DNA of 64,000 nt from Mytilus edulis (Eukaryota): contig NC_092354.1 in assembly GCF_963676685.1 (NCBI RefSeq), positions 81,530,001 through 81,594,000 on the forward strand, in the 5' to 3' direction. Of the stretch, positions 22,101-61,522 are shown piece after piece. Position 1 is the stretch's first letter; every line of letters starts with the position of its first letter. Under the pieces are notes generated by a model. The model was not told the origin of the DNA and did no database searches. It worked only from the letters and a program-made list of their open reading frames with translations. A program made the translations under genes and the position numbers.

Positions 22101-22405
22101 TTTCAGATAATTTGTCTAATTTGGAACGTGAAGTTATGAACCACCTTCAGCGGTATGTTAGAGAACTTGATAAAGTATTGTTGAAAAAATTTCTTAGATT
22201 TTGCACTGGATCTGATTTAATTTTGGATGGAAAGGATACAATCACTGTTGAATTTGTAGTTCTTGATGGTTTTGGGTGTCGACCAATAGCCCATACATGT
22301 GGTCGTGTTCTCAGAATACCAAGAAATTATGAAAATTTTACTATTTTCCGTAGCGAATTCAACAACATTTTAAATACTTCTGTATGGGTAATGGACATTG
22401 TATAA
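19185..22405 (+). CDS. HECT-domain E3 ubiquitin ligase (G2E3-like HECT) with a SAM-like N-terminus; two apparent frameshifts
   Basis: Exon 19185-19250 (MVSLIEFLKERNIPVDKVEEDK, then GTAAGC) splices in phase 0 to 20448 (TTTTCAG then IDCQVILLLSDDELTKYIPIYGDRIAV). Frames join via +1 shifts near 20645 (A8 run) and ~21090-21140. The C-terminus has HECT motifs GEGIFRDCLTEFW, FLRFCTGS and RPIAHTC (Cys codon 22298-22300). A possible non-coding first exon ends at 15747 (AAG/GTAAG). Confidence 0.82.
19512..20313 (+). mobile_element. HINE in the intron of the HECT gene
   Basis: TTTTTAGCTCACCT start, AGGTGAGC subterminal IR, terminal hairpin AGGCTCTTAAGAGCCT, (CGT)n tract. Confidence 0.78.
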
Positions 22406-33092: not shown

Positions 33093-35195
33093 CTAATACG
33101 CTGTGTCAATTTTCTCGGTGGCCAGTGACTCTATTTTCCAAAATTTCTCCAAGTCGTACTCATCGGTTTTTGTTGCGATCATCACGTTCATCATTGAAGC
33201 TCTCTTGTATCCATCTGTGTCAGAGTTGTGTGAATGTAGCGTTCCAGACAACAGGTATCCGATTTTTGATTGAACAGCTGTCGGTCCTTCGCCTCGGATA
33301 ATATCATTCTGAACAATTGACCAGAAGTAATCAGCTCCAATTAGAATAGAAATTTCAAAGTTTTCATCTGCTGTTACTGGGTGAGCTAATTTGATTCCTG
33401 ACAAATATGTAAGTTTTGCTGCTTGGCGTACATAGGTTCTCATCGGTACTGCGATCTCTGGAACGATCAAGACTCGAATCGGAAGTTTACCCTCTGTAGT
33501 TATGAGATATACCAATCCTGTACTCAAATGGCGAATTTTAGTACTATTTGCATTGTCTCCAAATCCGGATAGGTTAACGCTTTCAGTTCCAGTAGGTTTG
33601 AGTTTCAATTTTTCGGCTAATTCCTCTGTGATAAATGAGCGCTGTGCGCCTTCGTCAAACAATATTTTTGTATCAAGTATTTCATGTTCTGCACTTACTG
33701 GGTTAATTGCTGTCTTCAAAAGTACACGATCTGTCGATTGTGAGTGTAAAACAGTGTCTGGTTCCTCCGCGTTGTGTTGAATTGTGCCTACGGTTATATC
33801 CCCTGTTGGTTTGTTGTCTTCATTTGTTTTAACATTGTCTTTGCAAATGCTGGTGTGATGACGTTTGTGACACTTGTTGCAAGTTTTTGTAGATTTACAT
33901 GCGGACAAGCTATGGTGTCATAGACAGTTAAAGCATAAACGATCTTTTTTCACGATTGACATCCGGCCATTGTAATCAGATACTTTAGTGCAATTAACAG
34001 ACGAGTGTGGCTCCTTACAGTACGCACAGAGTGGCTTGGGTTTAGTGTTAGTTGCGTTTGTATTCTTGTTACCTCTATTTCGATTACTATAATTTGTATT
34101 TGTCAGAAAGGCGGCGGTAGCTGTAGGGTGTTCTAACTGTTCTGAAGTTTTGCCTGCATCCATAATATAAAGTTCATCGAAAATTCCACGGCGTAATTCA
34201 TTCAGTTGTAAATCTGTAGATCTATATTGTCTGGCAAGATTTCTGCGGATTTCACCGGGTAGTTTGTTCATAATAATGGGCACTAAAAACGCTCCATATG
34301 TGTCTTCACTTTGACCTAATGACTCCAATCCTCTAATGTGTATCTCAATTTCATCGTAGTAGTTTTTCATGCTAGATATCGTGTATTTAGGGGCTGGTAT
34401 ATCAACTAGTGCTTGCATATACTTCTGTCTTATTACATGCGATTGTCCATATCTTTCTTGCAGTAAAGAAATAGCTTTCTCATAATTTGCATGTGTAAGC
34501 GCAAACCCTGTGACGGTTTTCAATGCCTCATCATGGAGTAGTGACTTCAAATAATTAAATTTCTGAACGTTTCCAAGAGTAGTGTTTTCGTGAACGGATG
34601 TCTCGTATGAATCCCAAAATGACTGCCACTGCATAATATTACCATCAAAGGTAGGAAGATTCAATTTGGGCAACTTGTTGTACTCATTTAATCTAGTGTT
34701 ACTACGTGAAAACTGAGTTTCCGGTACACGGAAGTTTGAATTACATGTATTCTGTTTATTGTATATCTCGGGTTGAGCATAACTTGGTTGATCATGAGCG
34801 GGTTGAGCATGAGCGGGCTGAGCAGAGGCGGGTTGAGCAGAGGCGGAATGTGAAGGGTCGCTATAACTGACAAAATCTTTTGCATTTGTACTGAGTGTGG
34901 ATGTATTGACAAGAATGAGCTTTTGTATTTGCGTTATTTTTCCATCTAATGTGTAAGCATACTCATCTGAATCGACGATCTCGGCTTCTACTTCTCCTTC
35001 ATCAAGATTTTCTAGAATGTCCTCATTAAGTTTTTGTAGTGTCTCTTGTTTCTTCAACAGATTGTTCACAATTTTAGTTAACTCTTCAGTGTTCACGGGC
35101 TCATCTCCGTCGTCTCGGATGTCCTCAAATTTCTTCAAAAGTCGGGAAATAACGCTTCTGTGTCCTGCACGTATAGAACGTAGTTTGGAACTCAT
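33093..35195 (-). pseudogene. BEL/Pao gag (DUF1759-type, CCHC knuckles) plus aspartic protease, with an in-frame stop at 33918-33920
   Basis: LPKLNLPTFDG...WQSFWDSY; CAYCKEPHSSVNC; CFNCL*HHSLSAC continuing in the same frame; protease motif LFDEGAQRSF. Confidence 0.9.
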
Positions 35196-35211
35196 CCTGG
35201 TCACGGCACCA
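35194..35211 (-). promoter_or_regulatory. Primer binding site complementary to the tRNA-His 3' end
   Basis: TGGTGCCGTGACCAGGAT directly after the 5' LTR. Confidence 0.85.
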
Positions 35212-35212
35212 A

Positions 35213-35385
35213 TATCTTAAAGTGGTATAATCAGACTTTTTAGGCACAAATAAGAAATACTAGCTGGTTTTACTTGTATTGATTCTAAACTCCATTTGCA
35301 CATAAATCTCAACGTCATAAGTAGCATGACGTTACTATACATACATAGCGGTAACGCGAACGTCTAATGAACACAGTCCTGAACA
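35213..35385 (-). repeat. 5' LTR (TG...TA)
   Basis: Direct repeat of 30319-30491. Confidence 0.95.
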
Positions 35386-36446
35386 GGCGTTTATTTGGTC
35401 TATGCCCATGCATTGATGGGTACATAAGTCACTATTATGACTTCTTTTTATTTATCCACAATTACATTAACTGTGGACGTAAACAATTTTCCTTTGTTTT
35501 GCTTGGTCTATATAATTATATTAGCGTTAAAATAGGGAAATAGGAAGGATAATCTTGTTCGAAAATAAGTACCTGAATCAGTCTCAGGAAACAGAACCTT
35601 ATCAAGTTTTTATGAAGATGATCTCCTGAAAATAATCCATCCTCTTTTATATCTTTAAAAAATGTCATCCAAAACTGTGAGTTTTCTTTTCTATAAATTC
35701 CCCACCATGCATGATTCAATTCGTTGATTATGTTGGCTTGTGCCGTAAAGAAACGCACTGTTATTTCGAGCATACGTATCATTATCATTGCGTCGTAAAA
35801 AAGACTGCATTTCAGCGACCTTACTATTTTCGGTACCAAGATCTCCTCCCTTCCGAAGAATAGCTTTGACAAAATACCCAGAAATAACCCGAGGGTCACT
35901 ACTAGTCTGTCCTGCCTCCAGCCATATTATCAGTCTAGAAAAGCCATCTATGCATCCATTTATGCATATTCCAAAAGGTTTAAGTTTATCATAGGAATCC
36001 AAATGCCATATAAAGTTTGGCCCTTTCGAACAATATTCTCTCCTATGTAATCGACCTTTTCGTCGCATTTCAACTCCTTCAGGGTTTATAATTTGCATTA
36101 TAATTCGCACATACTCTTTTTGTATAGTTAAACCTGCTTGTCTACACTTCATAAACATCCAGCGATAACCATGAAGCCTTCCAGATCCTTTAATGTTGTC
36201 TTTGATAAAAGCAACGACATCTTCAAGTGGCGTGTAGTGTTTTCGGCGAAATAAACGTAGCTTCTTCAATATTCGTTTCAGGTGTCGATAAGAAATAATG
36301 TAGTGATGATGTTTTGCTAAAAGTGCCAGTATTTCCATATAATCGAGTCCCATTTCGAAATAAACCCTTATGTATTTCTCCATTCTTTCACTTTTAAGAG
36401 AAGATATTAGTCGCCGTACCATCAGCGCTGAATGAATTTGAATAAC

Positions 36447-36843
36447 ATTTTGTGCGCACATTATATTATGTCGTGCGCACATTATATTATATTGTGCGCA
36501 CAGTATATTATGTTGTGCGCACAATATATTTAAATTGAGCGCACAATATATTATGTTGTGTGCACAAGATATTATTTTGTGCGCACACGATATTATTTTG
36601 TGCGCACAATATATTTAAGTTGTGCGCACAATATATTATGTTGTGCGCACAATATATTTAAATTGAGCGCACAATATATTTAAGTTGTGCGCACAAGATA
36701 TTATTTTGTGCGCACACGATATTATTTTGTGCGCACAATATATTTAAGTTGTGCGCACAATATATTTAAGTTGTGCGCACAATATATTATTTTGTGCGCA
36801 CAATATATTTTTTTTCTTTGCATGTCCCTAGCGGGGCTCCGTA
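36447..36843 (-). repeat. Right TIR, ~17 copies of the same unit
   Basis: Reverse complement of the left TIR, including the variant units (GCGCTC, GTGCACAC). Confidence 0.92.
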
Positions 36844-44377: not shown

Positions 44378-45461
44378 TTATCCATTTGTAGATGGTGACG
44401 TTCCCTTGTCACCATCTTACGGTGTTTATATATCTCAACTTGTACGATTCGCTCTTGTATGTAACAATGTTTTAGATTTTAACGAGAGAAATGTGTGTAT
44501 TACTGAAACTATTACACTAGGGTTTTCGATGTCACAAACTGGTCAAAACATTTACTAAATTTTATCATCGGTATAAGGACATCATTCGTAAATATAGCTC
44601 AATATGCAGACTTCTTATACGTTCAAGTATTTCACATCCAATTTTTTTATGGAAATATTCTTTATAAAGCACAAAGGTGTCAGTATTCACCTCAGAAACT
44701 AACAAAACATTTGAATAGACTTATTAAGAAGTGATATAGTTACGATACTGTTGTCAGGTCATTAAAAATTGCATATTTTGGCGTTAATATTGATTCACTT
44801 ACAGGGTCTTTGCATCGGAACTAAACACATTTATTCAAAAAACAGTTGTTGGCATGACACGGGTTATGTTCTTCTCATATATGTTATGATGGTATGATAA
44901 TAAACTCCTAACTGGAAGGATTGTACCTGATGTACATATGATGAAATCATAATCTTTCAGTCAGTTTAATTGAAGTCTGGAGCTGGCATGTCAGTTAACT
45001 GCTAGTAGTCTGTTGTTATTCATGTATTATTGTCATTTTGTTTATTTTCATTGGTTACATCTTCTGACATCAGACTCGGACTTCTCTTGAATTGAATTTT
45101 AATGTATGTATTGTTCTTCCTTTACTTTTCTACTTTGGCTGGAGGTATAGGGGGAGGGATGAGATCTCACAAACATGTTAAACCCCGCCGCATTTTGCGC
45201 CTGTCCCAAGTCAGGAGCCTCTGGCCTTTGTTAGTCTTGTATTATTTTAATTTTAGTTTCTTGAATACAATTTGGAAATTAGTATGGCGTTCATTATCAC
45301 TGAACTAGTATATATTTGTTTTGGGGCCAGCTGAAGGACATCTCCGGATGCGAGAATTTCTCGCTACATTAAAGACCTGTTGGTGACCTTCTGCTGTTTT
45401 TTTTTCTATGGTCGGGTTGTTGTCTCCTTGACACATTCCCCATTTCCATTCTCAATTTTAT
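44378..45461 (+). mobile_element. 5'-truncated Penelope-like element, second family
   Basis: PFVDGDVPLSPSYGVYISQLVRF; the 3' part matches 60615-61522 and ~23775-24110. Confidence 0.78.
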
Positions 45462-47442
45462 TTTGAATAGTGACATTCCATTTGAATTTGCCTTGGAGTT
45501 TATTTTCTCTATGATCTTACTTCCTAAAACTTTCGAGTATCAACGTACTGGCTGTAACACCGAAAATATTAGGCAATACATTGTGTGACGTCATAATTAC
45601 CGATAAACACATTACAAGGTAGTGTCGCTTTTGATACTGACTATATCATGATGAATATCTTAACTCGAGCTGACGGGCTGGATCAAAGGATTAACTTCAA
45701 AACTTATAGTAGGTAATGAATGTTTGACGTCATGAATTTTGAAGATTTATTGCACTAGTGCTATATTAGATTTTATTGCACGCTACCTTTTGCTTACTTT
45801 ATGTGGGAAATATTATATTGCTATGCAATAAAATATGTTTCCCTCCAAAATATACAAGGAGACACTGTAAAATAAGCATCGTAACTTCCGTAGTATTCTT
45901 TAATCTCGTAGATGTAGTTGAAATTCCGCGAAATATAATAACATATGTTGGCAAATAGTCGGAAACTATTGACTGGTAAACAAAAAACCTTGTAATTTGA
46001 CAATTAGTGAAAATATGGTGTACCTTTTCTTTATTAGAAACAGATAACTTAGGTATGATCATGTTTACTATTACTCAAAGGGAGTAGACAGCATAATGGA
46101 TCTTCATTTGATTGTAGTATTAACAGTTCATTAATCCGTCCATATGTCTTGTCGCTTGTCTGTCACATGACATGCTGGTCGTATTTTATCAGATGCTAAA
46201 TTGTATACTGCTAATAATATGAACTACACATCATGTTGTTTCAATAGATGGGTATTGATATATACACATATATACAGGACTGAGTAAGCCAGGGACATAT
46301 TCAAACATTTACCTGAAAATTCTATGTATATATATAAAAATAAATACAAGATGTATTGAACTTCCATATCCTTTTTATCTGCATATACTAGCTAGTTGGT
46401 TTTATTTAATTGTACTGATTATGAATCATAGTAAAAAGCAAGCATCAAGATGCAATTCATTTATTTACAACATAACAGAAAAAAGATCATTGACATGTTA
46501 TTTATCCACCTACAAAAAAAAGAAACAAACTTATCAATGAATTTATTAATCAATTCATTAGCTAATCTCCACTTTAATTACAAAGTAAACCATTTGATTC
46601 AAACAAACCATTATAGTTCGTATATGTTTAACAATTAAAAATAATAAGAATGCAAATAATGAATTATTGTTATTTATTCCAACAAATCATCAGGCACTAA
46701 TAAGTCAATTTGTTTAGCAGATTTAATCTAAGAACTTCACCGAGTTTTAACTCCTATTTTAATACCAAGCATATTGATACTCAGTTAGTCTACCTTAATT
46801 ACATTGAATAATGTTGTAATACGTATCTATGTAATCATACAATAGTTCCTCAGTAACAATATTTTACTAATTTGTCATCGCAAAACGTGCAAAATATTGA
46901 ATGCAAGATCAGCTTTTACATAACACACTTAATAGTAATAGAGAGCTAATAACTAGACTGCTATTCTAATAATCAAAGTATTGATATGTAATTAGTTACC
47001 TCAATAACTATTAATGATGTTATTATACGTACATAGATGAGTATATGTAATAATACCAGGGTTCCGCAATAACAATTCTTTAATAATGAGTTTGGTATCG
47101 CAAAAATTAAATGGTAGTATTGTCGTTTCGGTTATTTATATTATGTACCTATTAATAATGGATATTTAATAAATCTATCACTCATTTCAACACTATCATT
47201 GTGTTCAAACTGTGTAAACTTCTACTTCAATGTATTGTGGGAGGAATATTTTGATGAATGTTTTATGAATAATTTGTAATCTGTTAACACGCATACCTCG
47301 TTTTGTTCTTTTGTAAATTTGTATGATTAACAACCGCAAAATGAAATCATTTGTAACCTTTGATGTTATCAAATCTCTTCAGGAAATACATACGTGTATT
47401 TAAATAAAATCATCATAGATAACAGGACTAAATTTTGTATAT

Positions 47443-47487
47443 ACGCCAAACGCGCGTTTCGTCTACAAAAGACTAATCAGTGACTCT
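47443..47487 (-). ncRNA. Family B hammerhead with a G8-to-U core mutation, within a retrozyme fragment at ~47405-47680
   Basis: Minus strand GAGTCA CTGATTA GTCT TTTGT AGAC GAAA CGCGCG TT TGGCGT. Confidence 0.7.
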
Positions 47488-47850
47488 CCAATCTAAAAAT
47501 TTTAAAAGGCCGAATAAAGTACGAAGTTGAAGAGCATTGAGGACCAAAATTCCAAAAAGTTTTGCCAAATACAGCTAATGTAATATATGCCTGAGGTAGA
47601 AAAGCCTTAGTATTTCAAAAATTCAAAATTTTGTGAACAGTAAATTTATAAATATAACCATATCAATGATAATTCATGGTATGTCGATTCGCAATTGAAG
47701 CACCACATTATGGATGTAATTTCTATGCGTGTCTTCCCTACATTCAGACACATACATATAGAAATAATTGCCAAAACAAAAAAAAAACGTACCAGGGAAT
47801 AATTGTAATGGTAACAATGTCTAAACAAAATGGATGTTACCTTGTCGTGT

Positions 47851-50307
47851 TTAGTAAGCCTTTGGTTTACGCATGCCTCCAATAAGTCCACCGGAAGGTC
47901 GTCTGTTGATACCATATCCACGGTAACCGCCATAACCGGAAGCATTAGTAGACCACCATGGCAGCCATTTACAACATGTTCTGTTCCACCAAGAATAGAA
48001 GGGCAGACGACATTGACTGCTGATTTGTATTTCTCCCTGACGACAGGACCAGCTACGACAGGTACACCACCATCTTCCTGTATAACAATAAGGTACTGGA
48101 AGTCTCAGAATTTAAGCATTCTTGGTAATACTTGCAAATGTGTAAAGCAAAATTAGCGATCAATTATACTATCAATAGACCTTTAGATTCTAAAACGGTG
48201 AATTAACTTTTCGATTTGAGGTTTTAAGTATAAATAAAGGATTTCCAGTTTTCATTAAAAAAAAAAAATAGTATATTTCGACACAGCATATAGTTCGGTT
48301 TTTTTCTTTGAATAATCGTTTGTATGGCCATTAAACATCAATATACAATGATATTGTTCATGACAGAAACATAATTCTATGATAGGATGATATTTTTTTA
48401 TTATATAAAGCGCAAATAATTGCAAAAAGATTGACAAAGATCATATATCAAATATGCAAGATTTGATTTGTAAAATTGTGAGTAAATCAAGTCATCATGT
48501 TAAACAGAATCGAATTATGAACGCAAAACTAGTTATTGACTTGGACAATAACACTCAACAGTGACGAAAAACGCTAGTTTCAACAAATAATTGCCACTCG
48601 AATCAAGGTGTTTAAGACATTCATAAAACAATGAAATTTATTTTATGATAACAACTATTATTCGTATATCGATTATTTGTATTTGTTTCAAATAATGTTC
48701 TCTTTACTTATAAGATATAAGAACTCGCCAACACTTGTACTGTTTTTTTTAGATGTTCCAATATTAATGCCTTCAACATAAATAAAGAGACCCCAACTGT
48801 CAAAAAGCTAACTGTTTCAACATAAAATGTATCGTTTATTTTAGTTTTGAAATGTTGTCAAAAAAAAGAGATAATTCAGACAATATCTAATAAAGAAATA
48901 TATACTGATTCAGATCTCCTGAGTTATATATCGATATAAACGTACATATATATGTATGAAGTGTTAATGATTGTGAACCAAGTCCTCTATATCATATCTT
49001 ATATATAAATATGAAACCATGGCTCCAGTTAGGAAACACATACACAAAAACGACAATGTGTGGATAACAATAACTAGTAGTTTAATGAATTTGAGGTAAC
49101 ATAATTTTTTTAATTTTCCATTTTTTTTAATAACAAAATCAAATAAACAAGGAAAGCGGTACATACCTGCTCCAAATCCACCACCATTATTACCTCCGTA
49201 CCCATATGGCCCACCCGGTCCAGATCCTGGTCCTGCACCACCAGGACCACTACCTATACTGCCTCCTAAACCATATGGCCAACCAGTACCAGAACCCGGT
49301 CCTGCACCTCCGGGACCACTACCTATACTGCCTCCCAAACCATATGGCCAACCAGTACCAGAACCCGGTCCTGCACCACCGGGACCACTACCTATACTGC
49401 CTCCTAAACCATATGGCCAACCAGTACCAGAACCCGGTCCTGCACCACCGGGACCACTACCTATACTGCCTCCTAAACCATATGGCCAACCAGTACCAGA
49501 ACCCGGTCCTGCGCCTCCGGGACCACTACCTATACTGCCTCCTAAACCATATGGCCAACCAGTACCAGAACCCGGTCCTGCACCACCGGGACCACTACCT
49601 ATACTGCCTCCTAAACCATATGGCCAACCAGTACCAGAACCCGGTCCTGCACCACCGGGACCACTACCTATACTGCCTTCTAAACCATATGGCCAACCAG
49701 TACCAGAACCCGGTCCTGCACCACCGGGACCACTACCTATACTGCCTCCTAAACCATATGGCCAATCAGTTCCAGAACCCGGTCCTGCACCTCCGGGACC
49801 ACTACCTATACTGCTCCCTAAACCATATGGCCAACCAGTTCCAGAACCCGGTCCTGCACCACCGGGACCACTACCTATACTGCCTCCTAAACCATATGGC
49901 CAACCAGTACCAGAACCCGGTCCTGCACCACCGGGACCACTGCCTATACTGCTTCCTAAACCATATGGCCAATCAGTACCAGAACCCGGTCCTGCACCTC
50001 CGGGACCACTACCTATACTGCCTCCTAAACCATATGGCCAACCAGTACCAGAACCCGATCCTGCACCTCCGGGACCACTACCTATACTGCCTCCTAAACC
50101 ATATGGCCAACCAATTCCTGTACCTGGTCCTGCACCACCAGGACCACTACCTATACTGCTTCCTAAATTATAGGGCCAACCGATTACATTTCCCTGACCT
50201 TGTATACTGCTACTAAGGGGAACACTACTGACCTTATTGAGTGCCAAAGTTTGCTGAAAAGACAAAAGTACCGTCAAAATGGTAAATAAGCTTCTTGGTG
50301 TAGCCAT
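47851..50307 (-). CDS. Secreted Gly-rich repeat protein A (~455 aa) with a C-terminal six-Cys module; exons 50307-49167 and 48077-47851
   Basis: TATA box upstream. Signal peptide MATPRSLFTILTVLLSFQQTLA. 14 x 23-aa repeats GWPYGLGGSIGSGPGGAGPGSGT. Phase-1 intron (GCAG/GTATGT...ATACAG/GA). Exon 2 reads GRWWCTCRSWSCRQGEIQISSQCRLPFYSWWNRTCCKWLPWWSTNASGYGGYRGYGINRRPSGGLIGGMRKPKAY*. The structure is conserved in paralogue B. Confidence 0.92.
49215..50182 (-). repeat. Coding minisatellite, 14 x 69 bp
   Basis: Near-identical units encoding the 23-aa repeat. Confidence 0.95.
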
Positions 50308-50360
50308 TTGTACTGTTACTGGGAGAATGTCCTGTGAGAACCTATACCACATCTTTCTGT

Positions 50361-50367
50361 ATTTATA
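50361..50367 (-). promoter_or_regulatory. TATA box of gene A
   Basis: TATAAAT about 55 nt upstream of the ATG, conserved in paralogue B. Confidence 0.7.
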
Positions 50368-50979
50368 CAAACCTATCACCAGCTGAGAACAGTAAGAAAA
50401 ACTAATATAGAAAGTGATTGAAATCACACAATGCACTCAATCGTCTTTTTTTCGATAATTTTATGTTACTTTTCTTTTATTCGTTTATTTGAACATTAAT
50501 AAAGGTTAAAGGTTAAAGATTGAAACAAATAATCAAATGTAACACATGCTATATGTCAATTGATCGTAAACAAGCTTATCACCACAAAACACGTTTCTAA
50601 AAACCAATTCAACATTACTTTTGTAATAAAATATGCACTTTTATTTAGGTGTTTCTTAATATACAGTAGAGCAAACCCGTTTTAAACACAACTTTAGATT
50701 GATGAACGTCTGACTCATTTATTGACCACATCATTATACAGAAAACATCGTGACAGACTTTAATTTACTGTAAATTTAGAAATAATTGCATGCATTTTTT
50801 ATCGCGATATTTTGAGATGAAACACAATAATGCAAAATCAATTAAATCCCTTTTAGTCAAACCCGAATGCTTAAAAATTATCAAATATAAAAATGTCTCT
50901 CCCAAATCAGAAGCCTGTAATTCAATGGTTTTCGTTTGTTGTGGTGTTTTTTTTGTTCATGTTTTGTAAATAAATATTA

Positions 50980-52330
50980 ATTATTTTTGGAGTGTTAAAA
51001 ATTCTTAAGAGGTTTTAGATAAAATACATGCTTTTAATGGTCCTTATAATTCTGTTGACAGTTATGATTTTTCTACCTGGTACACTACACTTCCACACAA
51101 TTGTATAAAGAAAAAGTTTTTGTATTTGGTAAAATTGTCCTCCGCGAATCTCATTGTTATTTTATTTGCTGTTACTCGTTTAATTTATTTATATATTGCT
51201 ATGCATTTCAGTTCATGACCACACTCAGTGAAGACCCATCATTATTATATTTGGTAGTTACATTCAAAAATACTTACCGTTTTCTGGATGATATTTTTCG
51301 TTGAATAATCCAGAGTTCTCTAAATATACTTCTGAAATTATCCCCAAAAACTTACTTTCACTAAATCTACAATAAACAGTAGCAGTTGTCCTTCCTAGAT
51401 TTAGACATTTCAATTTCAAACGGGAAACCACATACTAAAGTTTACATCAAAAGAGACGATTTTTCATTTCCTATTGTTAATTATTCTTTTTTAGACGGCG
51501 ATGTGCCTTTGGTTAAACCGTACGGTGTTTATATATCCAAACTCGTTCGGTATGCCCGTGTGTGTTCTGATGTAATAGAATTTGAAGAACGTTATCAATG
51601 CATCACTGGGAAATTATTGTGTCAGGAATTTCGATACCATAAATTACTTAAAACTCTACTAAATGCTTTCATAGATACAAAGATTTGATTAATAAATTTG
51701 GCTGTGAAAACTTTATAAAAATGGTTTTTCATATCCTAAATTTTACCGGTATATTGTACTTAAAGCGAAAAAAATCACCATGTGATCCATTTAAACTCAT
51801 CGAACCTTTAAGTAAACTTAAAAAATAAGGGTTATCGTCCCAATATTGTAATTATATCTCTGAATATAGTTTACATTGGCACTAATATCGATTTAGTCAT
51901 TAGCAAATCAAAACATAACTAAACTGTGTCTTCTTTTGAGGGGGGATCTAAAGAGACACAAACATGTTAATTGTTATCTCTATAAAAGTCGGTCCTCACT
52001 ATCCTACTACCTGTCGATACATTTAATTTTGACATTACACAAGTAATGTCCTCTCTGACTGTTCATGGCGTTAAGTACTAAATCCCTAGGATGTGTTTTA
52101 GTTGATTTCAGTCTCTGATGCATGATTTTCTTTTAATTGTGTTTGGATTTTAACTAGCTGTCAGTAACTGAGAGTACTCTCAAATCGTTGTTCCTTGTTA
52201 ATTCGACCTGTTGTTACTGTTTATAATGCTTTTTTGTTAGTTTATATTAATATGGATGTCTATTTATCAGCTTTGATTTTTTGGAATATCTTCTTATTTT
52301 CACTTTTTCGTACTACGTTTGTATAAACTT
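50980..52330 (+). mobile_element. Decayed Penelope-like RT fragment inserted in the left duplication arm
   Basis: YDFSTWYTTLPH, TYRFLDDIF, SFLDLDISISNG...KRDDFSFPIVN across several frames; boundaries approximate. Confidence 0.75.
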
Positions 52331-53784
52331 TAAGATTATTCTCCTTAAATCTGTACAGGGAAGTTTGCGATAGCTCTAATTGTATAGTTGTATTGTTGAT
52401 AATCACCCCAATTTATGTCAAGTGTTAAATTATGTATTCATATGACCGATCTTTCTTGGTATTCCTAATTATTGGAAGAATTTTATACACATAAGTAGTA
52501 TACATAAAACGAACGACACAGTTTTTTTTTCAATTACCTGTATATATTATTAAAAGCGTTTTTTTTTTCAATAGTGATTTTTTTCGAAGAGTTTAATATT
52601 TCGAAGTGGTGTCTTGGCAAGGGTTGTTTGGACTTGTTTGTTTGCTGTGTCGTTCATAGTGTGTTAATTTAAATCTTTTGATTGAGTGAAGCCTTCCAAT
52701 TTTTATTGTGTTTTTTTCTATGTACATTGTAGTGATGTTATGCTATTGATTCAGAAAAAGGGAGAAGGTTTCGTTGCATTTAAACGTTTAATCCCGCTGC
52801 AAATGTATGCACCTGTCATAAGTCAGGAATCTGATGGACAATAGTTGTCGTTTGTTTATGTAATTTATACGTATTTCACGTTTCTCATTTTTTTATAGAT
52901 TAGACTGTTGCTTTTCCCGATTGAATAGTTTTACACTAGTAATTTGGGGGTCCTTTAAAACTTGTTGTTCGGTGTGAGACAAGGCTCCGTGTTCAATATC
53001 TTACATTAACCTATAATGGTTTACTGTTATCAATTGTTATTTGGATGGCGAGTTGTCTTATTGGCACTCACACCGCATCTTCCTATATCTATAAGGCCGT
53101 TAGTTTTCTTGTTTGAATTGTTTTACATTGTCATTTCGGGGCCATTTAAAGCAGAGAATGTAATATGAGTTTTGCTCATTGTTGAATGCCGTACAATGAC
53201 CTATAGTTGTTAATTTCAGTGTTATTTTTGGTCCCTTATGGAGAGTTGTCTAGTTTGCAATAATACCACACCTTCTTTGTTTTTCTAAGTTTAACGATAC
53301 GTACCAAATCGAATTGTCGCGTTAATAAGCATATCGCAATATATTTTGCCAATTTCTTTTATTTGGTATAAGCACTCTTCATTGAAAATCACATAGCAAA
53401 ATTTGTATATTTGTCAAAGTTTAATGACATTAGTTGGTTATTTTGTTTACCTTTTTTGTCGTGACTAGATGTCTAATATGTCCTTAAGTCTAGTTTCCGG
53501 ATATTTTGTTTTCTTCAATCAATTCTAAGCACCACAATTTTTTGAACGGTACGAAATGTCGACACCATTTTATTTGTTTGTTTTCGTTGCTTTATTAAAT
53601 TACAAGAACATATATTCATCATCCTTTTCCAATGTCGTTGCTGAATTGATGCAGTTGTTGCAAATATCCATGTAAATCATGGAAGATGTACGCTGTTTTA
53701 CCTGTTCTAATTTATTATTTTGATGTTCTTATGAATTAATTATAGTGAACTTGCATTTAATTCTATTGTATACCTATATATATA

Positions 53785-54748
53785 TATACGAGTCTAAATT
53801 GAAAACTACGTTCAAACCTATGATTGTGATGGATATAAACCGCAATTTTTATACGTGTGCTTGTAAAACAAATTTCGTTGTAGAAGGCTATAAATACAGC
53901 ACAAACAACATTTTCCAAAAGACCAAAAAAATGAAAAAGTATATTTAAACAAAACGCATTTGACTAACAGGTCGAACAACTGATGTTCTTTAACCCTGCT
54001 GACTGCCATTGGCGATTGCCAAATAAAATTGATCACAAGATGTAACAAAATGGATCTTAATATCAATTTAATACTAAACAGAAAACAATTAACAAGTGGC
54101 CACGATGTTAAGCCACAAACATAAGGTGTCAATATTTTTTTTGAACACCAGATCCGGATTTCGACAATAATTGTCTCTGCAGTGATGTTAGGGATGGAAA
54201 CGGTATTTGGAAGGCCATATAAAAAGTACCCTCATTTTTAGATAGACTCTTGAATTTTAAGAGTCAATATAGGATGAACGGATCATATAAACCGGAGGGA
54301 AAATATGATACAAGCCCAAACGAAAAAATATAAACGAGTCTAAATTTAAAACTACGTTCAAACCTATGATTGCGTTGGATAAAAACCGCAATTTTCATAC
54401 GTGTGCATGTAAAACAAATTTCGTTGTAGAAGGGTCTAAATACAGCACAAACAACATTTTCCAAATAAAATTGATCACAAGATGTAACAAAATGGATCTT
54501 AATATAAATTTAATACTAAACAGAAAACAATTAACGTGTGGCCACGATGTTAAGCCACAAACATAAGGTGTCAATATTTTTTTTTGTACACCAGATCCGG
54601 ATTGCGACAATAAATGTCTCTTCAGTGATGTTAGGGATCGAAACGGTATTTGGAAGGCCATATAAAAAGTACCCTCATTTTTCGAAAAAAGTACTCTCAT
54701 GTTTAGATAGACTCTTGAATTTTAAGAGTCAATATAGGATGAACGGAT
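53785..54748 (-). mobile_element. Tandem dimer of a third retrozyme-like family (C), hammerheads at 54145-54188 and 54588-54631
   Basis: Two direct copies. Minus-strand consensus ACATCA CTGAAGA GACA n5 TGTC GAAA TCCGGA TC TGGTGT; each copy has one different core substitution (CTGCAGA; GCAA). Confidence 0.8.
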
Positions 54749-54749
54749 A

Positions 54750-54916
54750 TATACAACTCGTCTTAACATCAACCCAACAATGTTAGATCTTTAAATTTGC
54801 TTTCGCAAATTTTTTGTCCTTCCCTCGCCGGGATTCGAACTCATGCTACTGAAATATCGTGACACCAAATCGTCTGCACTCTTGCCGTCCCGCTAGACCA
54901 CACTACCACCTGGGCT
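54750..54916 (-). mobile_element. tRNA-derived SINE
   Basis: A-box TGGTAGTGTGG and B-box GAGTTCGAATCC, followed by a non-tRNA tail. Confidence 0.7.
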
Positions 54917-56059
54917 TTAAATGTTGTATATCGTGTACTATTATTTGTCTGATTGTCTTTTTTCTTTTTAGCAATGCTGTTGTCGGTTTATTTTCGATAT
55001 ATTAGTTTAAATGTCCAGCACAATAGTGAAGATGTGGTATCGGATTGAAAATAAGTTTTCTACACGTAAGGGCAACATTTCAATTTAAATTTGAGCATCC
55101 GTGGAAGAATTGTTTTAAGGTTGTGATAATGAAATCCTTGACTTTATAATTTATCAGTAGTATATAGACGCACTCCTTTAAGGCCAGAAATTCACATCAT
55201 TGACGGAATCACAAACTCATATGGGATATGAATGCAGCAAAATAATTTGCTATTAGATTTTAAATACGACCATTTGAATAGATACAATGTTGGAATTCAA
55301 TACTGATAAGATTGTGTGGAATTGTAGTCTTTCTGGTTTTGTTTTTTGTCGTTTTTCATTGATTGACATGGCATTGGTTTTTTAACGATTGAATGCCCCT
55401 TTGGCCTCTTCCGACTGTCTTTTAACAAGTTGTTTTCATTCCGGAAAACATTTCACATTTCACGTTATTGATACACTTCATTATTCTTTGCCTTCTCACG
55501 CTTTTTATGTTTTTTAACTGTCTTATTTCTGATAGTGGAAATTCAGAAATTATTGCGATATTTTATTAACGCGAAAATTCGATTTGGTACGTATCGTAAA
55601 ACTTAGAGTATATACAAAAAACGAATGTGTGGTATGATTGCAAACGAGATAACTCTCCACAAAAGGATAAAATAACACAGAATGTATAGCTATAGGCCTT
55701 CAACAATAAGCTATAAAAGGTCCCGAAATCACAATGTAAAAGATATTAAACGAGAAAACTAACGGCTTTATGAATGTACAAAACACGAACGAAAAACACA
55801 CAAACAAACGACAACCATTGAATTACAGGCTCCTGACTTTGGAGAGGCATTTTTATATTTGATATGCTTTTATGCACTAGGTTTTGACTAAAATGGTTTT
55901 AATTGATTTTGCATTATTTTGTATCATCTCAAATATCGCAATGATAAATTCACGCAGTTATTTCTAAATAACAGTGTTGCTTTCCCGTGTTTAAAAGTCT
56001 GTCACGATGTTTTATCTTCAACTTTGTACTTGTTTGGCTTTATAACTATTTTGATCTGA

Positions 56060-56103
56060 GCGTCACTGATGAGTCTTATGTAGACGAAACGCGCGTCTGG
56101 CGT
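56060..56103 (+). ncRNA. Type I hammerhead ribozyme (family B, intact) in a ~115-bp insertion upstream of gene B
   Basis: Identical to the 39675-39718 motif. Confidence 0.92.
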
Positions 56104-56581
56104 ATTAAAATTATAATCCTGATAACTATTATGAATCATGCTGAGGTCAATAAATGAGTCAGACGTTCATCAATCTAAATTTGTGTCCAAACGGTTTTGC
56201 TCTACTGTATATATAGAAACACCTAAATAAAAGTGCATATTGTATGACAAAAGAAATGTTAAAATTGTCTTTAAAAACTGTCTTGTGGTGATAAGCTTGT
56301 TTACGATCAATTGACAGAGAGCATGTGTTATATTTGATTATTTGTTTTACATGTTTCAACCTTTATTTGTCAATGATCAGACCATCAATTGACAGGTAGC
56401 ATATGTTATATTTGACTATTGGTTTTAATCTTTAACCTTCAACCTTTATGTATGTTCAAATAAAAGAATAAAAAAAAACTTACATGAAATTAACGAAAAA
56501 AAGACGATTGAGTGCATGTTGTGATTTCAATCACTTTTTTCTGTTGGTTTTTCTTACTCTCCTCAGCTGGTGATAGGTTTG

Positions 56582-56588
56582 TATAAAT
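56582..56588 (+). promoter_or_regulatory. TATA box of gene B
   Basis: TATAAAT about 50 nt upstream of the ATG, preceded by CAGCTG as in gene A. Confidence 0.7.
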
Positions 56589-56636
56589 ACAGATAGATGA
56601 GAGATAGGTTATCACAGGATCCTAGAAACAGTACCA

Positions 56637-58616
56637 ATGGCTTCACCAATGAGTGTATTTACCATTTTTACAGTACTTGTGTGTATTCAGCAAGCTTTCG
56701 CACTCAATAAGGTCAGTAGTGTTCCCTATGGCAGCAGCATACCATATCAGGGAAATGGAATTGGTTGGCGATATGGTTTTGGAAACAATATAGGTGGTGG
56801 CTCAAGCAGTTCAGGACCTGGAGCTGGAAATCTTTGGCCAAATAATTTAGGAGGCAATATAGGTAGTGGTCCTGGAACTGGAACTCGTTGGCCAATTTAT
56901 TTAGGAGGTAATACAGGTAGTGGTCCAGGAGCTGGACCTGGTTGGCCAAACTATTTAGGAGGCAATATAGGTAGTGGTCCGGGAGCAGGAATTGATTGGC
57001 CAAATTATTCAGGAGGCAATATAGGTAGTGGTCCAGGAGCTGAACCCGTGTGGTCAAATTATTTAGGAGGCAATATAGGTAGTGGTCAAGGAGCTGGACC
57101 TGTTTGGCCAAATTATTTAGGAGGCAATATAGGTAGTGGTTCAGGAGCTGGACCTGTTTGGCCAAATTATTTAGGAGGCAATATAGGTAGTGGTCCAGGA
57201 ACAGGAATTGGTTCGCCAAATTATTTAGGAGGCAATATAGGTAGTGGTCCAGAAGATGGAACTAGTTGGCCAAATGGTTTAGGAGGCAATATAGGTATTA
57301 GTCCAGATGGTTCATGGCCGGGAGCTGGTCTTGGTATGCCATATGGTTTGGGAAGCGGAGGTGGTGGTGACCCTATCATTGCAGGACCAGCATCTGGACT
57401 TGGTGGACCATATAGGTACGGAGGTAATAATAATGGTGGATTCGGCAGACCAGGGGGATTTGGAGCAGGTATGTACCGCACTACTTTTTTATTTGATTCT
57501 TAAATAGAAAAAAAGATTGGAAAAATCCGATAAATTATGTATCTTCAAACTTCATTAAACTAAATGAATTATAACAAGTTTTAAAGAGAAGACAAAAATA
57601 TCCTTTGTTATCCACACATTGTCATTTTTCTTATGTGTTTCTAAAAGGGAGCCATGGTTTCATTATACATACCAAATATATAATATAGAAAAATCGGTTC
57701 ACAATCCTTCACACTTCAAACAAATATATATGTTCGTTTAGATAGATGTATAAATAAGGAGATCTTAATCAGTATATATTTCTTTTGTTCTTTTCTTTTT
57801 AACAAATACAAATAACCGATATACGAATATTATTGTTGCATGAAAGTCTAAAACTCCTTGATTCAAGTGGCAATAATTTGTTGAAACTAGCGTTTTGCGT
57901 CACTGATATGTTTTATTGTCCATGCCACTAACTAGTTTTGCGTTAATATTTCAATACTTATTTTAAATGATGACTAGACTTACTAACAATTTTACAAATC
58001 AAATCTTGCTTTTTTTTTTTATATGTATCAATCTTTACCAATTGTTTCCGATTTATATTTAAAAAAAATGTCATCCTTACATATAGTTATGTTTCTTTCA
58101 TAAAAAAAACACATTTTTGAATATTAATGTTCATAGGCCAAACACATTTTTTAATCGAGGAAACGATTACCCCGCTATATTCGGTGTAGAAATATACTAT
58201 TGTTTTTTTTATGAAAACTTGAATTACTTTATTTATACTTAAAATCTCAAATCTGAAAAATAATTCATCCTTTTAAAATGTACAGGTCTATTGATAATAG
58301 TATTGATCGTTTATTTTGAGATAAGAATTTTAAATTTTTACCCAGAATTCATTACATTATAACACTTAAAGTGCCTTATTGTTATACAGGAAGATGGTGG
58401 TGTACCTGTCGTAGCTGGTCCTGTCGTCAGGGAGAAATACAAATCAGCAGTCAATGTCGTCTGCCCTTCTATTCTTGGTGGAACAGAACATGTTGTAAAT
58501 GGCTGCCATGGTGGGCTTCTTATGCTTCCGGTAATGGCGGTTACCGTGGATATGGTATCAGCAGACGACCTTACGGTGGACTAATTGGAGGCAGGCGTAA
58601 ACCAAAGGCTTACTAA
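56637..58616 (+). CDS. Secreted Gly-rich repeat protein B (~352 aa), paralogue of A; exons 56637-57468 and 58390-58616
   Basis: Signal peptide MASPMSVFTIFTVLVCIQQAFA. About 9 x 18-aa repeats WPNYLGGNIGSGPGAGPV. Same phase-1 intron and same Cys module as A; ends RRKPKAY*. Confidence 0.92.
56830..57310 (+). repeat. Coding minisatellite, ~9 x 54 bp
   Basis: Recurring TTAGGAGGCAATATAGGTAGTGGT at 54-bp spacing. Confidence 0.9.
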
Positions 58617-59146
58617 ATATGACTAGGTACAATCCAATATGTATTGATTAGAAATTTATAACTACAATTATTCCCTAACAACCTACAATTTATTTCGGTG
58701 ATTATTTCTAACTCTGTGTTTCTAATTTAGGGAAGAAACGCATGGAAATTACATCCATAAAATGGTGTTCAAATTGCAAATCAACATAACATTAACTGTA
58801 ACCAAGATTCAAATTAGGCACACTTTTTTAATTAACAAAGGATTAAGATTTCTCTCGTACCATTATATCAAATGACAAGAAAAAAAAAACAACCTATAAC
58901 ATGTCCTTTACATTAGGGGTTCAATTAAAGGCTTAAAGACACCTAACGAATTGAAAATAACTGTCAAATTTCGGACTTGGTATTGTTCAAAGAACTTAAT
59001 GGATATAATCTGGCTTGGTAGCTTGGTAAACATTTTACTTCTTTGACAGCAGCATTACAGTCTATACTATTGACAGCAATGTGTGAAAAAGTAGAAGACA
59101 TACATTTTATCAAATGTTTGGCCTTTTTAAACTTTTTTGGATTCGA

Positions 59147-59190
59147 GCGTCACTGATGAGTCTTTTGTAGAAGAAACGCGCGTCTGGCGT
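59147..59190 (+). ncRNA. Family B hammerhead with a broken core-proximal stem II pair
   Basis: CTGATGA GTCT TTTGT AGAA GAAA CGCGCG TC TGGCGT. Confidence 0.75.
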
Positions 59191-60614
59191 ATATACTAAA
59201 TTTAGTCCTGGTATCTATGATGAGATTATTTACCACCACTGGGTCGATGCAACTGCTGGTGGAGATTTATTTCCCCGAGGGTATCATAAACCCAGTAGTC
59301 AGCACTTTTTGTGATATCATGAATTGTCATTTATATGGTTATATTTTTTCATTTACTGTTTACGAATTTTTTAAATACTAAGACTTCATGTGAATTTCAC
59401 GTGAGATTGATGTTAAATTCAGGTGAGCAAATATGCCTGTGTATCTATGATGAGTTTTCTTTCTTTATCAAAGGTTATATCTAACTACACGTATGCATTT
59501 CCAAAAGAGATTTGATAACAACAAAGAGGATACATTTGACGGTTGTTAAACATAGTTTTATAAACTAAAAAAAATAAAAAAAATTTAAACTGATTACAAA
59601 TTAGTTGTAAAACATACATCAAAACATTCCTCCCGCAATCGATATTAGTTGTTTTTTGTTAATATATTTTGTACATAATAAGTTCGTTAGTTTTTCCGTT
59701 AAATGGTTTTACATATTTTATTTCGGGCTCTTTTACAGTTGACTATGCGTAGTTGGCATTTTGCATTGTTGAAGGCCGTACGGTGACATGTAGCTTTAAT
59801 ATTGCTGTGTCATTCTGTCTTTTGCAGAGAATCGTCTCATTGACAATCATACCACATCGGTTTTAATTAAAATTAACACACTGATATTGATTAAATAAGT
59901 GTTGCGTTCATTGTATATTCATTAAGTATGTCATGTATATTTGAAAAATAGTTACTTTGAACAGTTTTACTATTTATCGACGTGTGTTTGGTAAAGGACT
60001 GAGTAATATAGTGAATCTCGCAACTTTATTTTATCAGGTTTCCATTTAATATTCTTTTTTTTTGGATGACACATTATTTATAGAGGGGCGAAAGATACCA
60101 AAGTAATAGTCAAACTCCTAAATTGACAATAAACTGACAACACCATGGCTAAATGAAAAAAAAGACTAACAGACAAATAATAGTACACAAAAAAAACAAC
60201 ATTGAAAACTAATGACTGATAACACGAAACCCACTAAACACTGGAGGTGATCTCATACGTTCCAAAAAGGGTAAAGGACACTAAAATCATTATGTTGATT
60301 GTTTGGCATTATTGAAAATGGTTAGACACACACGAACTGTGGTTCACATTTTCAACTTGGTAATGTAAGGGAAGATTAGTGGATGCGTTGTGTTAAATTA
60401 ATTATTTCATTGATAACTTTTCTTTGTCTTTTTTTGTAGGTAGATATATGACATGTCAACGATCTTCTTATTTTATCTTGTAAATAAATGAATCGCATCT
60501 TGATGCTAGCTTTTTATATGATACATTATCAGTACAGTAAAACAAAACCAACTAACTAGTATGCAGATGAATTTAAAAGGATATGGAAGTACAATGCAAG
60601 TTTACGTGAATTGA

Positions 60615-61522
60615 TAAAATTGAGAATGGAAATGGGGAATGAGTCAAAGAGACAACAACCCGACCAAATAAAAAAACAACAGCAGAAGGTCACCAACAGG
60701 TCTTCAATGTAGCGAGAAATTCCCGCACCCGGAGGCGTCCTTCAGCTGGCCCCTAAACAAATATATACTAGTTCAGTGATAATGAACGCCATACTAATTT
60801 CCAAATTGTACACAAGAAACTAAAATTAAAATAATACAAGACTAACAAAGGCCAGAGGCTCCTGACTTGGGACAGGCGCAAAAATGCGGCGGGGTTAATC
60901 ATGTTTGTGAGATCTCAACCCTCCCCCTATACCTCTAACCAATGTAGAAAAGTAAACGCATAACAATACGCACATTAAAATTCAGTTCAAGAGAAGTCCG
61001 AGTCTGATGTCAGAAGATGTAACCAAAGAAAATAAACAAAATGACAATAATCATGATAATACAAAAATAACAACAGACTACTAGCAGTTAACTGACATGC
61101 CAGCTCCAGACTTCAATTAAACTGACTGAAAGATTATGATTTCATCATATGAACATCAGGCACAATCCTTCCCGTTAGGGGTTTAGTATCATACCATCAT
61201 AACATATACGAGAAGAACATAACACGTGTCATGCCAACAACTGCTTTTAGAATAAATGTGTTTAGTTTTGACGCAAAGACCTTATCAGTGACTCAATATT
61301 AACGCCAAAATATGCAATCTTTAATGACATGACAACAGTATCGTAATTATATCTCTTCTTAATAAGTCTATTCAAAGGTTTTGTAAGTTTCTGAGGTGAA
61401 TACTGACACCTTTGTGCTTTATAAAGAATATTTCCATAAAAAAATGGATGTGAAATACCTGAACGTATAAGAAGTTTGCATGTTGAGCTATATTTACGAA
61501 TGGTGTCTTTATACCGATGATA
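60615..61522 (-). mobile_element. Copy of the second Penelope-like family inserted in the right duplication arm
   Basis: Reverse complement of ~44565-45461; its flanks are contiguous in the left arm (~46270-46360). Confidence 0.8.

Follow-up and report, generated by a model that had tools for sequence, protein, structure and literature searches.

Predicted alpha-defensin-like six-cysteine modules in putatively secreted glycine-rich proteins of a Mytilus gene family

What is a six-cysteine, defensin-like module doing near the end of a large, glycine-rich mussel protein? The question is raised by two spliced genes, here called gene A and gene B, in a stretch of Mytilus edulis DNA of 64,000 nucleotides (assembly GCF_963676685.1, contig NC_092354.1, positions 81,530,001 to 81,594,000 of the forward strand; referred to below as the window, with positions counted from its first letter). 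The encoded proteins are best read, with a probability of roughly 0.55, as structural proteins of the extracellular matrix in a material that the mussel secretes (shell framework, periostracum or byssus). According to structure prediction, their module most likely forms a trans-defensin-type knot with three strands and three disulfides and is similar to alpha-defensins. Both genes belong to an unstudied, partly annotated Mytilus family.

Gene A lies on the minus strand. Its exon 1 (50307-49167), read as an open reading frame (ORF) with its translation, starts at ATG 50307 and not at a position further downstream, encodes a signal peptide and 14 repeats of 23 residues (GWPYGLGGSIGSGPGGAGPGSGT), and ends in GGFGAG at a phase-1 donor (G/gtatgt). 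The intron (48078-49166, minus strand; GT..AG, phase 1) was read from the sequence, and contigs from the transcript runs X1 and X2 join an exon-1 end of the gene A type to the module exon. Exon 2 (48077-47851, minus strand; 227 nt) holds the module and a Gly/Tyr/Arg tail that ends in GGMRKPKAY (stop 47853-47851). Gene B lies on the plus strand and consists of exon 1 (56637-57468; ATG, signal peptide, nine 18-residue GWPNYLGGNIGSGPGAGP repeats, Gly-rich linker and a phase-1 donor G/gtatgt), an intron of 921 nt (57469-58389; GT..AG, phase 1) and exon 2 (58390-58616, 227 nt; module, tail ending in GGRRKPKAY, stop TAA). The acceptor of exon 2 reads ttatacag in both genes.

The core from Cys1 to Cys6 (CTCRSWSC...NRTCC) is the 32-residue string CTCRSWSCRQGEIQISSQCRLPFYSWWNRTCC, which is encoded twice: at 58401-58496 on the plus strand (gene B), where a three-stranded, alpha-defensin-like sheet is predicted, and at 47971-48066 on the minus strand (gene A), where the plus-strand frame is nonsense and the reverse complement gives the peptide. 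An initial annotation, made from the sequence alone, had reported this peptide at both positions and left the strand unstated; translation agrees with it and supplies the minus strand for 47971-48066. In all six frames of the whole window, which contains no N bases, the cysteine pattern of the module occurs only in these two genes.

Transcript contigs from three different studies of the same organism (runs X1, X2 and X4) span 56622-57442 and 58387-58628; on the intron (57518-58300 in all three runs) and on the flanks their depth is zero. The run type was only guessed; the contigs are taken to be transcript assemblies because their coverage is confined to exons. In X1 and X2, position 57442 is joined to 58387 with TGGAG in between (reading GGATTTGGAGCAG/GAAGATGG, that is, GGAGCAG joined to GAAGATGG). 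The exon-1 end of these contigs is without 18 nt (FGRPGG), as in gene A, and splicing takes place exactly at the predicted site. The X4 joint (57470/58392) is the same junction shifted by two bases, and in one X2 contig a sequencing adaptor lies directly before 56622. The 57468/58390 junction thus has RNA support in spliced contigs from three studies. Together with the ORFs and the GT..AG phase-1 introns, the contigs bear out the two spliced gene models of the initial annotation, and translation of both genes gives the architecture that it had described (signal peptide, Gly-rich repeat, cysteine module, basic Tyr-ended tail). The idea that the repeat ORFs are non-coding was rejected on account of the transcript contigs and the conserved frame. 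A raw RNA-seq run (X24), which gives no strand or level, had zero reads on the locus among 12.4 million reads sampled; expression of the two genes is therefore not ubiquitous.

The N terminus of gene A is MATPRSLFTILTVLLSFQQTLA followed by LNK, and that of gene B is MASPMSVFTIFTVLVCIQQAFA followed by LNK; a hydrophobic h-region leads in each case to a putative cleavage site (AFA/L or TLA/L) that was judged by eye, from which we infer that the proteins are secreted. The spliced models were searched exon by exon and compositions were summed over exons. In gene A, 14.2 copies of a 69-nt unit (23 aa) span 49202-50181 with 94 % matches; in gene B, nine copies of a 54-nt unit (18 aa) span 56820-57306. 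The mature proteins of genes A and B would have masses of about 39.5 and 33 kDa, 39 and 29 % Gly, and net charges of +9 and +11, respectively. Both contain about 10-11 % Pro, 10-13 % Ser, about 5 % Trp and about 5 % Tyr, and in both all six Cys residues lie inside the module. The repeat region is probably a disordered or elastomer-like tandem array of Gly, Pro, Ser, Trp and Tyr.

The module comprises about 35 residues and is cationic and Trp-rich. Its first half follows C-x-C-R-x3-C-x2-G-E as in alpha-defensins, the spacing to which the initial annotation had drawn attention. In the mammalian alpha-defensins (HNP1-4, HD5, HD6 and the cryptdins; Pfam PF00323) the order C-x-C-x4-C...C...CC, the positive charge, the position of the domain in the last exon and the three-stranded sheet (predicted here) are alike; in most mussel paralogues Arg likewise follows Cys2 and Gly-Glu lies three to four residues after Cys3. 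The cysteine order and the first two spacings (C-x-C-x4-C) are those of alpha-defensins, whereas the later loops are longer. In alpha-defensins the Cys3-Cys4 and Cys4-Cys5 loops have nine residues each; in the mussel modules they have 10 and 11-12 (10 and 11 in the window, 10-12 within the family), and the glycine of the GxC bulge is absent from the whole family. These longer loops and the missing glycine had been recognised at the outset, and the alignment agrees. The Arg/Glu pair, put forward in the same place as a salt-bridge counterpart, was borne out only in part: Arg after Cys2 and Glu four residues after Cys3 are found in most paralogues, but Ser and Gln replace them in subfamily III, and the Gly before Glu is missing in subfamily V.

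No Pfam family exceeded its cut-off when both exons of the two genes and eight full-length relatives were scanned. Membership of the alpha-defensin family fails on hidden Markov model (HMM) score, on precursor architecture and on taxon, and the framework is only partly alike: the mussel module comes from a bivalve, has longer loops, no GxC glycine and an HMM score below cut-off, and sits inside Gly-rich proteins of 15-40 kDa, whereas alpha-defensins are released from a short anionic propeptide.

Trans-defensins in general offer a wider comparison. Three antiparallel strands and three disulfides are their defining features; in big defensins and beta-defensins, which occur in Mytilus and other bivalves, a phase-1 intron directly precedes the exon for the Cys domain (PMC7203481). 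In the superfamily the CC lies in the final strand, and its disulfides point to different elements. Of these traits the module has six Cys residues and three predicted strands, the last of which contains the terminal CC, and a phase-1 acceptor lies two to seven codons before Cys1 in all subfamilies. The intron is compatible with descent from an exon of the big-defensin type; as evidence it counts for little, since many secreted modular genes have phase-1 introns. The mussel proteins share with big defensins and beta-defensins the six Cys residues ending in CC, the phase-1 intron 5' of the Cys exon and, by prediction, the three strands and three disulfides. They differ from big defensins in having no hydrophobic N-terminal big-defensin domain, and the big-defensin HMM is silent at the loci. 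The Cys1-Cys2 spacing of beta-defensins is longer than the single residue found here, and beta-defensins rank below alpha-defensins in the fold searches (Z 2.1-2.8).

Structure models were computed with AlphaFold2 by using the paralogue alignment, for the module of the window and, as a second target, for a subfamily III paralogue with Ser/Gln in place of Arg/Glu. The first model has a predicted local distance difference test (pLDDT) score of 74.4 and three strands (residues 2-7, 15-24 and 27-37); the second has a pLDDT of 71.5 and again three strands. A Foldseek search of the PDB with the first model gave almost only alpha-defensins (HNP4, Crp4, HD6, cryptdin-14, HNP1 and HD5), with target-normalised template modelling scores up to 0.81, a root-mean-square deviation of 1.8 Å and E values of 0.6-8. 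VIA-align, which is independent of Foldseek, was run against 48,161 representative chains. For the first model HD6 came first (Z 4.2, 1.3 Å, 32/32 residues, 31 % identity), followed by HNP4 (Z 4.2), HNP1 (3.8) and a macaque defensin (3.4), with resistin (3.1) and beta-defensins (2.1-2.7) below. For the subfamily III model alpha-defensins filled the top ranks in Foldseek and ranks 1-4 in VIA-align, where HD6 was again first (Z 4.1, 1.7 Å, 32/32 residues, 19 % identity, that is, six residues). The identities of 19-31 % correspond to 6-10 residues, which fits an alignment of all six Cys residues of the models. Because the model without Arg and Glu matches too, the likeness to alpha-defensins is independent of the R/GE motif. 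The defensin-like fold of the initial annotation thus gains from alpha-defensins heading all four structure searches, and loses from their weak scores and from Pfam matches that stay below threshold.

The exon-2 protein matches at least 36 places in the 1.37-Gb genome of the same organism, all but two of them on chromosome piece C11, where the family forms clusters at 80.03-80.75 Mb and 81.58-81.75 Mb (the window spans 81.53-81.59 Mb). At least 26 of the matches are intact terminal exons. Wherever the flank is long enough, the relatives have the same layout: a signal peptide and low-complexity exon, an intron of about 0.7-1 kb and a module exon. Five subfamilies were distinguished by repeat and tail. 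Subfamily I (gene A, gene B) has Gly/Pro/Trp tandem repeats and ends in KPKAY; subfamily II has GGLIGGG and GGGI repeats and ends in GGKKSY; subfamily III is G/L/I-rich and ends in GKGYY; subfamily IV has GGSGY repeats and ends in KKGSSY; and subfamily V is Tyr/Pro-rich (YPxTYPGS) and ends in PPKGA. A Trp, C-T-C, two further single Cys residues, a Pro and the terminal CC are invariant in the paralogue alignment. Every terminal exon of the family encodes exactly six Cys residues; the module charge is +3 to +10 and the isoelectric point (pI) of the exon product is 9.0-10.3. The acceptor is of phase 1 throughout and lies two to seven codons 5' of Cys1. The ratio of nonsynonymous to synonymous differences (pN/pS) is 0.15-0.31 for the module within four subfamilies, and the module is under purifying selection. 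The module is beyond chance, because its Cys pattern is unique to two sites in the window, recurs in at least 26 intact paralogous exons and is held by purifying selection.

When 1.84 billion representative proteins were searched exhaustively with HMMER, four relatives came up, and a profile search of proteins found 15. Every named relative belongs to M. edulis, M. galloprovincialis, M. trossulus or M. coruscus and is labelled 'uncharacterized' or 'hypothetical'; a match to an already characterised family, which was considered at the outset as a possible objection, was thus not among them. The protein searches, which have limited sensitivity for short divergent modules, detected no relatives outside Mytilus. 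Region-restricted word searches returned only the queries themselves, and literature searches by accession or by module or tail peptide string gave nothing relevant on the family. The C-terminal part of one M. edulis protein (P0005) is identical to the terminal exon of locus L028.

Several family members were seen in passing. The subfamily V loci (L025-L030, G000:C11:81.59-81.75 Mb) begin 3 kb past the end of the window. Subfamily V proteins (P0005, P0008, P0010 and P0011) are secreted, have 150-165 aa and an Arg-rich module of +6 to +10 (+10 in most), and carry Tyr/Pro repeats (STYPPTYPGSMYPQMSYPTYP) in their tails that are reminiscent of the decapeptide of mussel foot protein 1. At locus L007 (G000:C11:80393574-80396786, minus strand) the module leads into an open frame that exceeds 800 aa and has Gly/Asn repeats (GNGNGGGNGYGNG), a composition that recalls the Gly/Asn/Tyr-rich matrix proteins of byssal threads. 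The closest gene model to the window genes in another M. edulis assembly (P0001, CAG2234233.1) lacks the WW ahead of Cys1, carries a Tyr at the position of Cys3 and has a frameshifted tail; either the model is faulty or it represents a third copy, or an allele, that is decaying. Loci L009, L023 and L024 and further genome matches have an in-frame TAA or TGA in the module exon, so the clusters also contain pseudogenes.

The role in a structural material is favoured because of the size and regularity of the repeats, the GPGxx and aromatic motifs, the basic Tyr-ended tails and the Tyr/Pro repeats of subfamily V, and also because processing sites around the module are missing and expression appears to be tissue-restricted. 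The GPGxx and aromatic motifs are reminiscent of elastomeric silk and of byssal flanking domains, and a conserved dibasic processing site flanking the module was not found anywhere in the family alignment. In such a material the repeats would supply the bulk or elastic phase, the folded cationic, aromatic knob might dock to other matrix components (chitin, acidic proteins or itself), and the Tyr-rich ends could serve as sites of oxidative cross-linking.

Two shell proteins invite comparison. The shematrins and KRMPs of the pearl-oyster prismatic-layer framework have the C-terminal signature RKKKY/RRKKY/RRRKY (PMC3896809). The tails KPKAY, KKSY, KNAY, KGYY and KKGSSY resemble it, and a signal peptide, a basic pI, Gly-rich repeats with aromatics and a basic C terminus ending in Tyr are shared. 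The mussel tails RRKPKAY, MRKPKAY, GGKKSY, GKGYY and KKGSSY are, however, not of the form R/K4-Y, and the likeness is at most compositional. Of the comparison with RKKKY-type tails drawn in the initial annotation, the basic, Tyr-terminal character stands; the published motif is unmatched and subfamily V ends in PPKGA. We know of no six-Cys module in a shematrin.

The second is periostracin of Mytilus edulis (Waite et al. 1979), which PMC3821031 describes as a basic protein of about 20 kDa with 55 % Gly and 10 % Tyr plus dihydroxyphenylalanine (DOPA), and as never sequenced. Proteins of subfamilies II and IV, which are basic, of about 15-17 kDa, with 48-50 % Gly and 5-7 % Tyr, are alike in composition only, and this likeness may serve as a lead only; the two proteins of the window differ by their larger size (33-40 kDa) and lower Gly content (29-39 %). 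The loci concerned are L003-L006, L008 and L016-L022 (G000:C11:80.16-80.75 Mb, except L022, which lies on C10).

A number of results weigh against the interpretation as matrix proteins with a defensin-type knob. The statistics of the fold matches are weak: Foldseek E values are 0.6 or higher, none reaching 0.001, and Z values of about 4 lie below the level regarded as safe for the tool. The fold rests on prediction at moderate confidence (pLDDT 72-74) for a tiny domain, and the C-x-C...CC pattern may have led AlphaFold to reproduce known alpha-defensin structures. The Pfam model Defensin_1 (PF00323, gathering cut-off 21.4 bits) reached at best 14.6 bits (E 0.049), in one paralogue of about 25 tested, and a profile of 20 modules gave no match to all PDB sequences at E up to 10. 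A homodimer prediction of the module scored 0.02, which bears on self-association neither way. Literature searches yielded no mention of the family in a paper or proteome. Lastly, a cationic, Trp/Arg-rich six-Cys domain combined with LGGG/IGGG repeats is also the architecture of hyastatin and the type II crustins (PMC2866484).

The failures of profile comparison also speak for the view that the likeness to alpha-defensins is a coincidence or an artefact of prediction. The module would then be a mussel-specific disulfide knot of independent origin whose connectivity or fold is another one or agrees by convergence, and the match to C-x-C-R-x3-C-x2-G-E would be due to chance. This view has a substantial but minor share of the probability; it addresses the fold and not the role. 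The single Defensin_1 alignment below threshold covers profile positions 1-13 of 29 (CTCRPGLCRKGEL), the two modules of the window gave no match to this model at E up to 10, and the Defensin_1 and big-defensin HMMs, scanned over the genome of the organism, found nothing at any family locus. Look-alikes in the ESM Atlas belonged to unrelated clusters only, at about 0.88, which is below the level that counts. The loss of the Arg/Glu pair in one subfamily, the absent bulge glycine and loops that are one to three residues longer point the same way, as does the distribution of alpha-defensins (disulfides C1-6, C2-4 and C3-5), which are known from some mammals only (PMC7203481). On the other side, two models of different targets superpose on whole alpha-defensin chains (32/32 residues, 1.3-1.7 Å) at identities that fit an alignment of all six Cys residues, alpha-defensins take ranks 1-4 of 48,161 chains for both, and the family shares with big defensins and beta-defensins a phase-1 intron that borders the Cys domain on its 5' side. 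Convergence would, moreover, leave intact the statement that the module works like a trans-defensin knot.

A role in host defence, the main rival to the structural role, is less probable and is put forward by analogy. The proteins would then be multi-domain, Gly-rich antimicrobials in which the defensin-like module is active and possibly chitin-binding and the Gly region is accessory, on the pattern of hyastatin, of the type II crustins or of big defensins, with their N-terminal domain and beta-defensin-like domain. All modules are cationic (+3 to +10) with abundant Arg and Trp, antimicrobial defensins have the fold that is predicted for them, and subfamilies II and III have GGLIGGG/GGIIGG repeats. 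Mussel defence peptides are typically encoded in large tandem clusters that duplicate rapidly. Hyastatin is made up of an N-terminal LGGG/IGGG domain with a six-Cys domain at the C terminus, binds chitin and depends on the Cys domain for activity, and in type II crustins a Gly-rich domain precedes the six-Cys region (PMC2866484). The order of domains is analogous; the Cys domain of the crustacean proteins, which are haemocyte-derived and of about 10-12 kDa, is penaeidin- or WAP-like, whereas that of the mussel proteins is predicted to be defensin-like. With 33-40 kDa, 9-14 near-perfect repeats and one relative with more than 800 aa of repeats, the mussel proteins are far above the known Gly-rich antimicrobials in size. 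Their basic Tyr-terminated tails and YPxTYPGS repeats look like those of cross-linkable material proteins, and the module has no processing sites around it. Mussel haemocyte peptides have been mined intensively and the family is still unnamed, which is a weak argument. The structural and host-defence readings do not exclude each other.

That the proteins are precursors cut into small bioactive peptides of a hormone- or toxin-like kind, with the repeats as spacer or pro-region, is very improbable, as the RR and RRK motifs in the tails of genes A and B that would suit it are not conserved in other subfamilies, the repeats have no flanking cleavage sites and the conserved part is the module rather than the repeats. 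The idea of the module as a released peptide was rejected, because conserved cleavage sites flanking it are missing.

Should the predicted fold and pairing hold, an alpha-defensin-like framework would exist outside mammals and be fixed in structural-looking proteins instead of occurring as a free peptide. This would bear on the evolution of trans-defensins (exon shuffling across a phase-1 intron and parallel rearrangement to the alpha type) and on the ways in which mussels make or protect the materials that they secrete. An evolutionary proposal that goes further, and that we regard as speculative and rather unlikely, is that Mytilus independently made a framework of the alpha-defensin type, possibly from a big- or beta-defensin-like phase-1 terminal exon, and co-opted it as the invariant core (for building or docking, or as an in-built antimicrobial) of at least 30 secreted cationic, Gly/Tyr-rich material proteins; the sister subfamilies may include periostracin. 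If the fold prediction fails, what is left is a lineage-specific family of Gly-rich secreted proteins that is new but otherwise ordinary. The family sequences can be used in searches of periostracum, shell and byssus proteomes.

Genes A and B lie in a head-to-head inverted duplication with a left arm at 44641-50567, which holds gene A, and a right arm at 56381-61445, which holds gene B. The arms were delimited by inverted repeats (I1-I12, 78-93 % complementary), and unique sequence (50600-56380) separates the divergent genes. The two genes are a recently duplicated head-to-head pair of the Mytilus multigene family. A TATA-like box (tataaata) lies at 56582-56589 on the plus strand, and the 5' ends of the gene B transcript contigs (56622-56627) follow about 35-45 nt downstream of it; a second such box lies in the same conserved promoter block of gene A at 50360-50367 on the minus strand (inverted-repeat arms I8 and I4). 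A tract of 141 nt is identical between the copies (58374-58514 on the plus strand and 47953-48093 on the other strand); it consists of 16 nt of intron and 125 nt of exon and spans the module. Outside this tract 8 of 102 sites of exon 2 differ between gene A and gene B, and the chance of 141 identical bases at that divergence is about 8e-6. Gene conversion between the inverted copies, in a tract centred on the module, or extreme constraint is therefore the likely explanation.

Elsewhere in the window, an ORF of 437 aa on the plus strand (21092-22405) has a weak match to the HECT ubiquitin-ligase domain (E 1e-5). A BEL/Pao-type long terminal repeat retrotransposon occupies 30607-36524 on the minus strand; domains recognised in its ORFs are Pao peptidase A17, the zinc-binding and core domains of integrase, DUF1759, DUF1758 and DUF5641.

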